This document shows, piece after piece, positions 28,691 to 60,859 of a stretch of 64,000 nt of DNA. Each line of letters opens with the position of its first letter. Position 1 is the first letter of the stretch. The notes under the pieces were generated by a model. It searched no databases, was not told where the DNA came from, and saw nothing but the letters and a program-made list of their open reading frames with translations. Source of the stretch: Camelus dromedarius (Eukaryota); contig NC_087462.1 in assembly GCF_036321535.1 (NCBI RefSeq), forward strand, positions 23,932,001 to 23,996,000. Direction: 5' to 3'. A program made the translations under genes and the position numbers.

Positions 28691-28768
28691 CTTAAGGGCA
28701 TCCAAGATCCTGCCATCGTAGTCAATCACCACCGTGTCTCCTTGCTCGCCCTTGAGGCCTGGGGGACC
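28691..28768 (-). CDS. COL23A1: COL23A1 exon 16 (78 nt): GPPGLKGEQGDTVVIDYDGRILDALK
   Basis: CTCAG|...|GTAGCC; diagnostic non-collagenous linker IDYDGRILDALK. Confidence 0.97.
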
Positions 28769-33930: not shown

Positions 33931-34148
33931 TCAGGGTCAGGACTGGGACTGAGAGTACAACCAAGGTCGGGGTTCGGGTCTATGAATCCACCTGGGGTTA
34001 CAGTGCAAGGTCTAAATTGGGTTAGGGGTCTGGTTAGTGTCAGATTTAAGGTTTGATTGGAGTTAGAGTCTGGGTTGGGGCTGGGTCTGGACTAGGGATA
34101 GGGCTGGGGTTGGGGCTAGCTCCGGGATCAGGGTTTGGGGTTTTGGTG
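33931..34148. repeat. Degenerate telomere-like hexamer array (NNRGGG)
   Basis: Period-6 units TCAGGG, TTAGGG, CTAGGG, ATAGGG, TTGGGG, CTGGGG. Confidence 0.75.
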
Positions 34149-34179
34149 GCTTCAGAACCAGGTCCATGCCCTCTCTTAC

Positions 34180-34296
34180 CATGGGGCCTGGTGCTCCCCT
34201 GGGGCCGTCTTTCCCGGTGTCTCCAGGAGGGCCCCGGGCCCCAGGGGGTCCAGGAGGCCCTGGGGGCCCAGCGGCTCCTTCCTGCCCTTGGTCTCC
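34180..34296 (-). CDS. COL23A1: COL23A1 exon 9 (117 nt): [39 protein letters not shown]
   Basis: TTCAG|...|GTAAGA; 13 perfect triplets. Confidence 0.97.
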
Positions 34297-34689
34297 CTGA
34301 AAGAGGCGGGGCCCAGCGTGACCCTGCGGGTGAGGGGAAGGGGGCCTGGCCTCCAGAGGGAGGCCTCCTCAGATGCACGGCCACATGCCTTCCCCTTCCC
34401 CGCCCTCAGCAGGCTCCCAGGAGAGGGCTTTGTCGTTCGTTGGGCCTCTTGTCACTTCTTGGTGGTCACATGAACGGACAAGTCCCTATACGTCAGCAAG
34501 AGAGGCCAACAGGGCCTTGAACTGTCCATGGCAGGTGCCACCTCTCCAGCTCCAGTGCCCGAAGCCCAGCTATGGTGTCGAGGTGGGAGATGGGGCACAC
34601 TGGCAGTGAACAAGGCACCAGTGCCCACCCAGGCCCCTTCCTGCTGGGACAGGGACTGCGCACCTCCTGAAAGACCTTCCTGGTTGGCC

Positions 34690-35365
34690 AGCTCCTGTTT
34701 TACTAAGTGGTGGAGGTGCACTCTCGGGCATTCGTTCCCGAGGAGAAACGGGTTCACACAAAAACCCATGCATGGATGTCCACAGCGGCTTTATTCATAA
34801 TAGCCCCCCAAACTGGAAACAATTCAAGTGTCCTTCAGTGGTGAATGGTCAACCAGCTGGGCTACATCCATATCACGGAACACAGCTCAGCCAGAAATAA
34901 AAGGAAAAAAGCGTTGACACATGCAGCAACCTGGATGCATCTCGAGACAATTATGCTGAGGGAAGAAAGCGGGTCTCAAAAGGTTCCATACCGGATGACT
35001 GCATCTACACAAGAGTCCTAGAGTGCGAATTTCGTAGCGATGGAGCACAGCTTAGCGGTGGCCAGGGGTCACGGAGCGGGGCAGGGATGGAGGGGACTGT
35101 AGCTATAAAAGGGCAGCAGGAGGGGTCTGCGTGTGGTGGTGGCAAGAATCTCGAGGTGTAAAATTGCATGGAACTAAGTAGACACGCAAATGGGTGAAAT
35201 AGGTGAAACTGGAAGCAGGCTGTTGGATCACATCAATGTCAGTTTCCTGGACGTGAGATTGCACTACCGAGCTGCAAGATGTTGCCCCGGGGGGAGCCTG
35301 GGTGAAGGGTACATGGAGTGTTATTTATTACAACTGCATGTGAGTCTATGATTATCTCAAAAAAA
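34690..35365 (+). mobile_element. L1MC-type 3' fragment
   Basis: GCTTTATTCATAATAGCCCCCAAACTGGAAACAA..CAAGTGTCC, GCAACCTGGATGCATCTC, CTGGGTGAAGGGTACATGG, ACAACTGCATGTGAGTCTA. Confidence 0.8.
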
Positions 35366-36369
35366 GGGATGGTCGGTGGGGGGTACCCAAAGGGCCACAC
35401 AGTCTCTCATGCAGCACAGAATCCCTGACCCTCGGGCCACGTTAGTACTGGCTCAGACCTCAGGCAGCCAGAGCCCTCACCTTGTGGCCCCACCCACAAG
35501 GGGAGACCACAGTGCCACTCACACTTCCCGTTGCCCCAGGGGTGCCCACCTAGCACGGGCACAGGAATGGGGTACGCCTGGCTCTCAGTGCCAGCGGCTC
35601 CCAACCTTCCTGTCACCAAGAAAGGAAGGAGCCTTTTGCAGATCAGGACCATGCTCTGTGCCCAGCGCGGACGGGCGAGGCCTCCTGGAGGTTACCTCGC
35701 CCGCCCCTGTGACCAGCTGGCCGGGCACTGCTACTGTCCCATTTTACAGATGGAGCGGCCGGGGCTCTGAGAGGGTAGTCATTTCCTCATGACTACAGAG
35801 TTTGGAAAGGGAGTGGCTCCTCTGGCCACGGAGGCAAGTGGTCTCTTTTAGACACTTTTTTTCATCCATGGGCCCCGTGATAAGAGAACTTGCCTCTCTG
35901 GACAACTGCCCCTAAGACATAGCTTGTTTTCCCAATTAAAAAATTAACAGAAGCGCTCAGTGTCCACCGCGTGTATCTTCTGATCAGTCTGACTCAGCCA
36001 GTGTCCTGACCGAGAGGATAGAACTCCAGCCAAAAGTAAAGAGAACTGGGTTTGGTTCAGTCACCCAGCCGGTGTGGCGTGGGTGGTGGGTAATTCCTGT
36101 CTCTTTTTACACCATATCAGATACCCTACCCACTGCTGCTCCTTTGGGAACCACTGGCCTGGCCTCTCCTTATCAAAGCAGAAGATGGGTGTGGATACTT
36201 GAGTAGGTCCCAGAGGGTCTTCCCCTGAGTTCCTCGGGGGCGAGGCGGGCCAGCCTCCTCCTCCTCTCCCCGCCGGGACTGGCTGGCTGAGGTCTCGCCC
36301 TGGGAAGGCGGGGTGAGTCGCGGGGAGCACGCACACCAGGAGCCGGGACCCGCCACTCGGCCAGTCTAC

Positions 36370-36441
36370 CTTGAGGACGTGGCGACCGTACACGTGATGG
36401 TCTCTACTTATAAAGCCCGGGTTGAGCCTCGGGAAAACCAT
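36370..36441 (-). CDS. COL23A1: Candidate alternative (cassette) exon '8b' of COL23A1 (72 nt): MVFPRLNPGFISRDHHVYGRHVLK, COL25A1 NC2-like
   Basis: Pyrimidine tract CCCTCCTGCCTTTCTCACC...CTGACCAG| acceptor, AAG|GTAGAC donor, phase 0 at both ends, no stop; 11/24 identical to the recalled COL25A1 MVFPKINHGFLSADQQLIKRRLIK at the equivalent position (after GPR, before GDQ). Confidence 0.75.
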
Positions 36442-37558
36442 CTGGTCAGCAAACAGGTGTGTGGTGAGAAAGGCAGGAGGGTGATTTAGAAACCACCAGG
36501 CTACTTTACGGAGGCAAAGCCACTTAGCCCAGCCTGGGGAGAGGCAGCTTGGTCACTGGAGGACCACGTATTCCAGGGACGGCTGCCGTGCTTGGTTCCA
36601 CCCCACCGGCTCCTCTGCAGGGACCCTGCAGTCTTCAAGAGCCAGAGTCTGTCTCCTCCTGACTCCGAGTGGGCCCTGTGACTGGTGTGACGGGCAGAAT
36701 GCAGTGGACGTGAGGCTGTGTCTGTTTCGGAGACAGCTCTTAACCAGCCTGGCGGTTCCGGCCTCCTGCCTCTTGGAATGCTGCCCTCTGGGACATCCCT
36801 TTGGGAACCCCCTGCCAGGATGAGAGAGGCCCGAGGCGCCCAGAGACCCACGTGTGGGCACCCCCAGCTGAGCTCCCACCAACAGCTGCATCAATTACCA
36901 AGACCGGCTTTGTGGCTCCACCGCAGGGGTTCTCCACGCTGCTTCAGCCTCCATCGAGGAGACCCCTGGCTCGGCACAAGGCAATTCTGGGTCCCTGGGC
37001 CCAGGGGGCAGAGACTCTGATCTGTTTGCACCCGGGGTGCTGGGTGCCCACTGTCATGACTGCCACACATCTTTACCTCGGTAGCTTGGAGTAAGGGCTG
37101 TCACCCCCACTCCCAGTGGGAGAAACCGAGTCTTACGAGGAAGTGACTCATTCCAGGTCACTTGGCTGGTAAGTGGCAGAGCTGAACTCTGGGCTCAGGG
37201 CTGCTGGCTCCAACCACAGTCTCCCCTCTTTCTGGGGCCAGTGCCCTCAAGAGGGTCAGTCTCCAGCCTGGGCTGGGCCAGCCCCACTGTCTGCCCATCT
37301 ACGGTGATGAGGGTGACTGGGATGTCTGCCAGAGACCCTCCTCTTTGCAGGGGACAGCAGCCTCGGCCAAATCAAGGTGCCTGGGGCCTTCACTTTCATT
37401 TAAATGAAAACGGGCAGCGAGACAGACCACGGCGGGGAGTGGGGAGGCTGGGCACCTCTTTCTGTGATAAGCATAGGGACCCAGAAGAAACACTAGGTAT
37501 GCCTTATAATGATATAAAACAAACCACGCGGGGTGGGAGGAGGGTGCTCAGTTCTCAC

Positions 37559-37585
37559 CCGGGGGCCGAAGTCTCCTGGTGCACC
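37559..37585 (-). CDS. COL23A1: COL23A1 exon 8 (27 nt): GAPGDFGPR
   Basis: CCTAG|...|GTGAGA; identical to recalled human. Confidence 0.95.
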
Positions 37586-38789
37586 CTAGGGACAAAAAAC
37601 AGGGAACCCATTACGGCCATTTGTATTACTTCCTCACATGTATGGAACATGAAGCTCAGTGCTTCACGTTCACGGCCTCACTGCATTCCAATAAAAACAG
37701 CACACAGGCTCTATATCATCTCCATTTCCAATGAGGAAACTGAGGCACAGAGAAGCTAAGTAAGTTGCCCAAGGCCACAGAGCTAGCAGGTCCAGGGCTG
37801 GGAGCCGGGTGGTCTGTTATCTGTTGCCAGCCCCCAGACACAGCGGAGCAGAAGAGTGAGGGATGGTAACTGATGCACGGTTTTAAGTCGCCAAGTTTTG
37901 GGGCAGTATGTTATATAGCAATAGATGCCAAGTTTCTCTCTGGTTTCAACGCCCCTGCCTTAATCATTTCTATGACTTGGTGGCATTAGCCAGACGGGCG
38001 GGAAGGTGACCACTGCTGGCCAGCAGCACGAGTGTCTCATCATCTACGAAGTACCCTCAGACCACGACCTCGTGCAGTTTTTCCCATGTGACGCTGCTTC
38101 TGCCTTACAGAAGGAGACACTGAGGCCCACAGAGCTGGGCAACTTTCTGAAGGCCACACAGTTGAAGGGGGAGCCGGAATGTAAACCTGAGGCTCTGAAC
38201 ACCGGATCCTGTGTTGTGCTCAGCCCTGATGGTGGAGTGGAACCCTGGCCGTACTGACCTACAAGTGCCTGACCTCTGACCTATGAGGGCCACATCGCAG
38301 TCGGGGTTGGGGGTGGCCCAGCCCAGCCATGCCCTGCCATGCCTCAGAAGTGCCCGTGGGTCCTGCCACACCCAGGGCTGCAAAGACCGCAGGGCCAGCT
38401 CTCTCAGTCTTTCCTTGGAGAGGTTCCTCATAAAGAAAGGTATCAGTGGTCCCTGTTCAACCCCTGGGCTTTCCTGGCACCCTCCCTGTTTCAGGATTGA
38501 TTCTTTTGGAAACCCGTCATTCTGGGTAGACTGTGCTTTGAGTTTTGTTACACTCCGGTGCCAGGAGAACTCAGATCCAACCCTCCAAGTACTTTAAATT
38601 GTCAAATGTAAGCTTTGTAACCACTTTAGGAGGGAGGCACGACTAGCCCCACTTTACAGATGGGGAAACTGAGGCTCCAGGAGGGGATGTGAGTTGCCCA
38701 AGGCCACACTCTGGAACCGGGGTTTGGAGGCAGGTTTCTGGCCTCCTTGATCAGCCTACTGTGTCTGGATAGCCGCCAGCATTGCTTAC

Positions 38790-38816
38790 CTTTTCCCCTT
38801 TGGGGCCTGGAAGTCC
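38790..38816 (-). CDS. COL23A1: COL23A1 exon 7 (27 nt): GLPGPKGEK
   Basis: TCCAG|...|GTAAGC. Confidence 0.96.
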
Positions 38817-40174: not shown

Positions 40175-40201
40175 GGGTTTGCCATCCAGACCCAGTGGCC
40201 C
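40175..40201 (-). CDS. COL23A1: COL23A1 exon 6 (27 nt): GPLGLDGKP
   Basis: TCCAG|...|GTAAGT. Confidence 0.96.
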
Positions 40202-43506: not shown

Positions 43507-44260
43507 ATGTATAAAACTNNNNNNNNNNNNNNNNNNNNNNNNNNNNNNNNNNNNNNNNNNNNNNNNNNNNNNNNNNNNNNNNNNNNNNNNNNNNNNNNNN
43601 NNNNNNNNNNNNNNNNNNNNNNNNNNNNNNNNNNNNNNNNNNNNNNNNNNNNNNNNNNNNNNNNNNNNNNNNNNNNNNNNNNNNNNNNNNNNNNNNNNNN
43701 NNNNNNNNNNNNNNNNNNNNNAAAGATACCAGCAAACCCGTGTTCATTGCAGCATTGTTTATAATAACCAAGACATAGAAACAAGCTAAGTGTCCACCAA
43801 TGGATAAAGAAGATATATACACATAGACACCCATATATACACAATGGAATATTATTCAGCTATAAAAAAGAATGAAATCTTGCCACTTGCAACAACATGC
43901 ATGGACATCGAGGTGCATTATGTTAGGTAAAAAAGTCAGACAGAGAAAGACAAATACCGTATGGTCTCACTTACATGTGGAATCTAAAACAAAACAAAGC
44001 AAAAAGAAAAAAACCCACCAAGCTCTCATAGATACAGAGAACAGATTAGAGGTTGCCAGAGGTGGCGGGGGGCGGGGGTGACTGGGGGTGAAATGGATGA
44101 AAGGGTCAACAGGTACAACCTTCTAGTTATAAGATGAACGAGTCTTGGGGATGTATGTGCAGCCTGGTGACTAAAGGCAACAGTACTGTATTGCATATTT
44201 GAAAGTTGCTAAGAGAGTAGATCTTAAAAGTCCTCATCACAAGAGAAAAAAAAAAAAAAA
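43507..44260 (+). mobile_element. 5'-truncated L1 with an L1MA9-like 3' end and poly(A), interrupted by the gap
   Basis: TGTTCATTGCAGCATTGTTTATAATA, AATGGAATATTATTCAGC, GAAAGTTGCTAAGAGAGTAGATCTTAAAAG..CATCACAAG A15; flanked by a 27-nt direct repeat. Confidence 0.85.
43519..43721. other. Assembly gap (203 N)
   Basis: Run of N. Confidence 1.
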
Positions 44261-60832: not shown

Positions 60833-60859
60833 CGGGTAGCCATCTCGTCCTGATTGCCC
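60833..60859 (-). CDS. COL23A1: COL23A1 exon 5 (27 nt): GQSGRDGYP
   Basis: CACAG|...|GTAATT; identical to recalled human; 20.6-kb intron 5 follows. Confidence 0.93.

Follow-up and report, generated by a model that had tools for sequence, protein, structure and literature searches.

A 72-nt segment in an intron of COL23A1 is probably a genuine, selectively maintained coding exon of this gene. In collagen XXIII it would correspond to the NC2 exon of the transmembrane MACIT collagens (XIII, XXIII and XXV) and, in mammals, serve as an alternative cassette. The probability of this reading was put at about 0.7. The segment was studied in a window of 64,000 nt of dromedary DNA (the whole stretch that was analysed; positions are those of the window). 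The exon is homologous to an exon of the same length in COL25A1, is conserved with its frame and splice sites in other animals, and is under constraint at the protein-coding level.

Gene context and anatomy of the exon

COL23A1 was read on the minus strand of the window as a chain of short Gly-X-Y exons, which continues to about 18.8 kb (Table 1). The candidate exon is separated by 1117 nt from the GAPGDFGPR exon upstream and by 2073 nt from the 117-nt exon (GDQGQEG...) downstream. The positions of these two neighbours had been given correctly in an earlier reading made from the letters alone (hereafter the sequence-only reading). The 117-nt exon was also matched by blastn in the cross-species comparison. 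Further along the gene, an exon encoding GPPGLKGEQGDT runs into TVVIDYDGRILDALK, an interruption which we take to be NC2 of collagen XXIII as described and the counterpart of the coiled-coil NC3 of collagen XXV. At positions 43519-43721, inside the large intron that precedes the studied exons, 203 N mark an assembly gap or a stretch that was masked.

Table 1. COL23A1 exons and features of the candidate exon, by position in the window
Feature	Position	Strand	Remarks
Exon GQSGRDGYP	60833-60859	-	Collagen exon, first in listed order
Exon GPLGLDGKP	40175-40201	-	Collagen exon
Exon GLPGPKGEK	38790-38816	-	Collagen exon
Exon GAPGDFGPR	37559-37585	-	27 nt, constitutive, upstream of the candidate; orthologues in L001 (GAPGDFGPR) and L009 (GEAGDIGPR)
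Acceptor region	36442..36491	-	CAG acceptor and modest pyrimidine tract; also the conserved proximal intron block
Candidate NC2-like COL23A1 exon	36370..36441	-	72 nt, phase 0/0, stop-free; read 36441..36370 as ATGGTT...CTCAAG; encodes MVFPRLNPGFISRDHHVYGRHVLK
Donor AAG/gtagactgg	36361..36369	-	4.5 bits; AAG/GTAG type, as in the COL25A1 NC2 exon
CpG-enriched patch	36200..36499		Spans the exon and the beginning of the intron that follows; CpG observed/expected 0.70-0.74
Exon GDQGQEG...	34180-34296	-	117 nt, constitutive, downstream of the candidate; orthologue in L009 117 nt, paralogue in L007 108 nt
Exon GPPGLKGEQGDT running into TVVIDYDGRILDALK	28691-28768	-	Later interruption in described collagen XXIII

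The sequence-only reading had proposed a stop-free segment of 72 nt in phase 0/0, with a CAG acceptor and an AAG/GTAGAC donor (the slash marks the splice site). Sequence and translation agreed with each of these points and gave 24 residues, MVFPRLNPGFISRDHHVYGRHVLK. The segment has three properties expected of a cassette exon: a length divisible by three, no stop, and flanking exons of the same phase. Its two ends fall on triplet boundaries, so that reading frame and Gly-X-Y register survive whether it is included or skipped.

Both splice sites look usable, though weak. At the acceptor (...cacctgtttgctgaccag/ATG), the pyrimidine content is 61% over 18 nt, versus 67-94% in most neighbouring exons. 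The tract that had been called real is thus present, but only modest. A possible branch point (cTcAc, read by eye) was located about 26 nt 5' of the acceptor. By consensus, the donor was scored at 4.5 bits, versus 6-12 bits in most neighbouring exons. A motif scan revealed no telling splicing-factor motif beside the exon. The CpG observed/expected ratio at the exon is 0.70-0.74, versus about 0.35-0.40 close by (0.23-0.48 over the neighbouring 200-nt windows). The local elevation in CpG claimed earlier was confirmed in this way; the count of about 19 in 200 nt was too high, with 16 CpG in 36270-36470 and 17 in 36200-36399.

The COL25A1 NC2 exon and the likelihood of a chance match

All AG..GT phase-0 segments of 45-120 nt on the strand of the candidate were collected from the window, and 3102 of the 7095 were stop-free, so that an open frame alone carries little weight. 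The frame of the candidate itself is open over 163 codons (36064-36552, minus strand), through both splice sites. Such frames are common in this GC-rich window and the open frame was not accepted as evidence for a coding exon. Because this frame stays open through both splice sites, read-through 'proteins' are given at this locus by prokaryote-style gene callers in several animals (P0002, P0005 and P0007).

The peptide was then scored against the NC2 peptide of COL25A1, as read from the DNA of a contig locus (L007, described below). The ungapped BLOSUM62 score was 64. Among 63,608 stop-free 24-mers from both strands of the whole window (mean -26, SD 10), the runner-up reached 21, and none of 200,000 shuffles attained 64 against the same peptide. 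Taken as sequences, the candidate and the COL25A1 NC2 peptide are similar far beyond chance. The identity of 11/24 between them, claimed in the sequence-only reading, was recomputed with the same value.

JGI metagenome contigs were searched with a degenerate DNA pattern (M-V-F-P-x-(L/I)-x-x-G-F-h-x-x-D-(H/Q)). Three loci were obtained, all of them animal DNA carried along in the samples. L007 (Ga0065711_1027953), L009 (Ga0065711_1005674) and L008 (Ga0181612_147918) are vertebrate host contigs of 17-45 kb from two JGI metagenomes. In bacterial and archaeal genomes (596 billion bases), the same pattern matched only once, with an internal stop. This match (L010; JAYKIK010000041.1, 6130-6173; Synechococcus MAG) was discarded as a chance match, the stretch holding a stop codon.

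L007 is a COL25A1-type contig. Its 72-nt exon, cag/ATGGTG...AAG/gtag, encodes MVFPKINHGFLSADQQLIKRRLIK in the same phase as the candidate, and the NC2 peptide of this host is identical to the human one. A 108-nt collagen exon follows about 870 nt downstream. Like the candidate, the COL25A1 NC2 exon is 72 nt long, has phase 0/0 and an AAG/GTAG donor, and in L007 it directly precedes the homologous GDQGQ-type exon. The upstream COL25A1 exon lies outside locus L007; the shared position of the two exons is backed by the L007 downstream exon, by the exon series of L009 and by the order of the human collagen XXV protein. In a machine-read Clustal alignment, human collagen XXV runs ...GDQG(P)R-MVFPKI-NHGFLSADQQLIKRRLIK-GDQ... 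(PMC4678570, supplement 1). The COL25A1 peptide named in the sequence-only reading therefore exists both in this alignment and in the exon of L007. Its length agrees with the NC2 deletion made in COL25A1, which covers residues 165-188, i.e. 24 residues (PMC2807601).

The two exons also differ. Collagen XXV as described includes the residues of its NC2 exon, whereas the candidate is absent from described collagen XXIII. Human collagen XXIII (NP_775736) reads PGDFGPRGDQG... in the same alignment, with no insert (PMC4678570, supplement 1), and GDFGPR is joined directly to GDQGQ there, in agreement with the sequence-only reading. The flank upstream of the exon is GDQGPR in COL25A1 and GDFGPR in COL23A1 of the window. 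Identity of the COL25A1 NC2 peptide to the collagen XXIII exon is 11/24 for the window and 14/24 for L009, which evolves more slowly. The core common to the COL25A1 and collagen XXIII exons can be written MVFP+hN.GF..-D........R..h.K (+, basic; h, hydrophobic;. and -, variable). In COL25A1, NC2 contains a basic motif that binds amyloid-beta and for which heparin binding is predicted (PMC2807601). The basic KRR cluster linked to this binding (PMC2807601) contrasts with GRHVLK in the window.

Collagens XXIII and XXV are the closest pair among the three MACIT genes (PMC4678570). The third, collagen XIII, has a non-collagenous interruption at the equivalent MACIT place, as the candidate would provide. 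In human collagen XIII, NC2 ends ...PPVVIKRRTFQ and is followed by GEQSQ (PMC4678570, supplement 1). This human sequence shares with the candidate a hydrophobic-basic-hydrophobic tail before the GDQ/GEQ triplet. At the protein level, NC2 of collagen XIII is far longer, and the N-terminal MVFPRLNPGF half finds little likeness in it. The candidate and the 72-nt NC2 exon of COL25A1 would derive from one ancestral exon, probably related to the C-terminal region of the collagen XIII NC2.

Orthologues, coding constraint and database searches

With a 30-residue query, HMMER found three read-through ORFs on animal genomic contigs among 1.84 billion representative proteins. The AG, the 72-nt open frame and the GTAG are retained at all three of these loci (L001, L003 and L006), where the exon peptides are MVFPRLLPGFVSRDHHLYNRRVLK, MVFPRLNPGFISRDHHGYSRHVFK and MVFPRLLPGFIGRDHHLYNRRILK, respectively. 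In L001, the GLPGPKGEK and GAPGDFGPR exons were found upstream of the orthologous exon, and L001 is therefore the same gene as in the window. L008 and L009 represent one much more distant vertebrate orthologue, in which the exon is retained along with its frame, acceptor and donor. The 72-nt exon of L009 reads tag/MVFPRLNHGFLANDQLVFSRRVLK/gtag. It stands in the series GPLGLDGKP, GPPGPKGEK, GEAGDIGPR, [72 nt], 117 nt, 36 nt, 27 nt (L008/L009), and the order and sizes of the L009 exons (27, 27, 27, [72], 117, 36 and 27 nt) are those of the window. When L009 was compared with the window by blastn, the exons alone aligned, the introns no longer doing so. Its peptide is identical to that of the window at 15/24 positions and to that of collagen XXV at 14/24. 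Judged by these identities, the L009 peptide bridges the window and collagen XXV, as common descent predicts.

The acceptor AG is retained in every orthologue, as cag or tag, and the GTAG donor in L001, L003, L006 and L009. Frameshifts, stops or a lost AG or GT, named in the sequence-only reading as marks of a decaying pseudo-exon, were not seen in the orthologues, and the length was kept as well. A four-way alignment was made with the window, L001, L003 and L006. Excluding the pair L001-L006, which are close relatives (83-94% identical throughout), pairwise identity was 81-88% in the exon, with no gaps; 70-87% in the 50 nt upstream of it, with few gaps; and 54-73% in the more distant intron, with many gaps. 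Beyond the 50-nt block, on its upstream side, the window is 54-72% identical to the three other species. About 20 nt downstream of the exon are visibly conserved, a stretch too short for scoring. The exon and the proximal intron are thus conserved above the intron background across species.

The basic cluster (KRR or RR) of a MACIT NC2 exon is lacking in the exon of the window. An RR pair is found in collagen XXV and in L001, L006 and L009 (YNRRVLK, YNRRILK and FSRRVLK among the three). RH stands in its place in the window (GRHVLK) and L003 (SRHVFK) alone, through a CGC-to-CAC change. Among the orthologues compared, the loss of RR is specific to the lineage of the window and L003. The claim that the basic stretch of collagen XXV is replaced in COL23A1 is consequently right for the window, where GRHVLK contains neither KRR nor RR, but it describes one lineage, and the three other orthologues keep RR.

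Coding constraint was estimated by the Nei-Gojobori method. The dN/dS was 0.10 for window-L003, 0.45 for window-L001, 0.38 for window-L006 and 0.27-0.50 for the other pairs; the check suggested in the sequence-only reading thus came out at 0.10-0.50 among the closer relatives. Against L009, synonymous sites were saturated and dN was 0.27. For window-L003, 6 changes were counted at about 16 synonymous sites and 3 at about 56 non-synonymous sites (Fisher p = 0.003). Parsimony on the four taxa counted 10 changes as synonymous and 11 as non-synonymous (p = 0.02 if 25% are expected to be synonymous). The first 16 codons are tightly kept, mostly with third-base changes, and codons 17-23 are variable. 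The last eight codons vary considerably among mammals, and the codon-position bias is weak (9, 4 and 8 changes).

Sequencing runs were searched through a run index. All three sampled words of the 72-nt exon were contained in 13 runs, X1 and X2 among them. When the query was widened to 421 nt around the exon (39 words), these two contained 0.10 of the words, i.e. about 4, essentially the exon alone. This exon-only pattern would fit a spliced mRNA, but it is suggestive only. X1 and X2 were not counted as RNA evidence: both are small, were labelled as RNA by a guess and have a size that would also suit reduced-representation DNA. The metatranscriptome runs X3, X4, X25 and X26 contained 0.87-1.00 of the words, intron included, and X7 contained 0.33. 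The RNA runs that contain the intron point to pre-mRNA or to DNA carry-over.

Protein word indexes were queried with the 163-residue read-through frame, a 76-residue spliced peptide and a 227-residue frame around the later exon. Genomic read-through ORFs alone were returned, and no spliced fragment with or without the exon. Candidates in these searches are limited by the length of the query, which leaves full-length isoforms of about 540-565 residues out of reach. The database speaks neither for nor against a spliced form. The described human collagen XXIII (NP_775736) presumably has 540 residues. Among the 1.84 billion representative proteins, no full-length collagen matched the 24-mer, in agreement with the absence of the exon from the commonly represented mammalian form. 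Long invertebrate-looking repeat proteins (P0001, P0003, P0004, P0006, P0008 and P0009) were rejected as chance likeness amplified by repeats, and not as homology. They matched the first half of the peptide, FPRLNPGFISRD, with E-values of about 1e-6 to 6e-5. They contain many units of the FDRLTSGFVKK type between basic pairs and look like neuropeptide precursors. A literature search found no paper mentioning the candidate exon or its peptides. It is quite possible that automated gene models, especially those of non-mammals, already include the exon.

Alternative readings and use of the exon

An exon that coded in the vertebrate ancestor, and perhaps still does so in non-mammals, could have become an unspliced pseudo-exon in mammals, where it would slowly decay. 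Such a relic would be absent from the described human protein, as the candidate is. The weak acceptor tract and donor, the variable C-terminal third and the loss of the RR pair in the window and L003 would suit it as well. It is nevertheless unlikely, since the AG, the GT, the 72-nt length and the open frame are present in all four species despite an intron difference of 27-46% and frequent gaps. The exon identity of 81-88% across these species, the dN/dS of at most 0.50 in all pairs and the conservation of the intron just upstream also argue against decay. Conservation of this kind could in principle belong to a non-coding element, i.e. an enhancer within the intron, a regulatory patch rich in CpG or a regulator of splicing, whose open frame would be incidental. 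Open frames are common in this GC-rich DNA, CpG is raised, and the conserved block extends beyond the exon by about 50 nt on the upstream side and 20 nt on the downstream side. A non-coding element cannot explain a protein-level similarity to the COL25A1 NC2 at the same gene place, with the same length and phase. Synonymous changes are moreover in excess, coding similarity alone survives in the distant orthologue and no Rfam family was matched in 34000-38000. We consider this explanation very improbable.

The level of conservation, being that of a coding exon, would also be expected if the exon were constitutive in the species of the window and the insert-free form were particular to the human and mouse reference transcripts. 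In favour of constitutive use, the paralogous exon of COL25A1 has the same weak-looking AAG/GTAG donor and belongs to the described protein. The splice signals of the candidate are however weaker than those of most neighbouring exons. The nearest relatives by sequence share the architecture of the window, the mammalian reference protein is without the exon, and no representative full-length collagen has a close match to the 24-mer. Constitutive use was judged quite unlikely.

A coding exon used as an alternatively spliced cassette with weak splice sites is the most likely state in mammals. This regulated use is favoured because the human protein is without the exon, the splice sites are weaker than those of the neighbours and the adjacent intron is conserved. 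Weak splice sites, a length divisible by three and a conserved flanking intron are the usual signature of conserved alternative exons. Alternative splicing is on record in this family: by the title of a cited study, six alternatively spliced exons of collagen XIII affect COL1 and NC2 (reference 52 in PMC4678570). According to the 2015 family study, documentation of alternative splicing was still inadequate for collagens XXIII and XXV (PMC4678570).

The exon would go back to the common ancestor of collagens XXIII and XXV, and selection would maintain it in several mammals and in a distant vertebrate. Its inclusion between GAPGDFGPR and GDQGQEG would place 24 non-collagenous residues at a Gly-X-Y triplet boundary. 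The insert would break up the long first collagenous domain, leaving two triple-helical segments with a short non-helical linker between them, situated where collagen XXV has its NC2. Skipping would give the uninterrupted GDFGPR-GDQGQ helix, which is the described form: same gene and same flanking exons as in the window, without the 24 residues and with three collagenous domains. Since the later interruption TVVIDYDGRILDALK of collagen XXIII itself remains, a protein with the insert would have four collagenous domains. The sequence-only reading had likened such an isoform to collagens XIII and XXV. That comparison does not hold, as collagens XIII, XXIII and XXV are each described with three collagenous domains (PMC4678570).

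The existence in mammals of an undescribed, regulated isoform of collagen XXIII is proposed more tentatively and at a little under even odds. This isoform would retain the ancestral MACIT NC2 interruption and have four collagenous domains, with a linker in the first helix carrying RR or RH depending on the species. By analogy with collagen XXV, the linker may affect flexibility, heparin-type binding (where RR is kept) and protease access.

As described, collagen XXIII has no counterpart of the first interruption (NC2) of its sister collagens XIII and XXV. A discontinuity in the domain alignment of collagen XXIII with collagens XIII and XXV was reportedly pointed out by Koch et al. in 2006, in J Biol Chem. 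An NC2-retaining isoform, if real, would remove this long-noted mismatch, and could in particular tissues change how flexible the protein is, how it binds heparin or other ligands, or how readily proteases reach it. If the exon is used, all three vertebrate MACIT genes inherited the NC2 interruption, the candidate being the third MACIT NC2 exon, and cells can probably make collagen XXIII in both versions, with the interruption and without. Studies of shedding, of integrin or heparin binding and of collagen XXIII as a cancer marker may then cover one form only.
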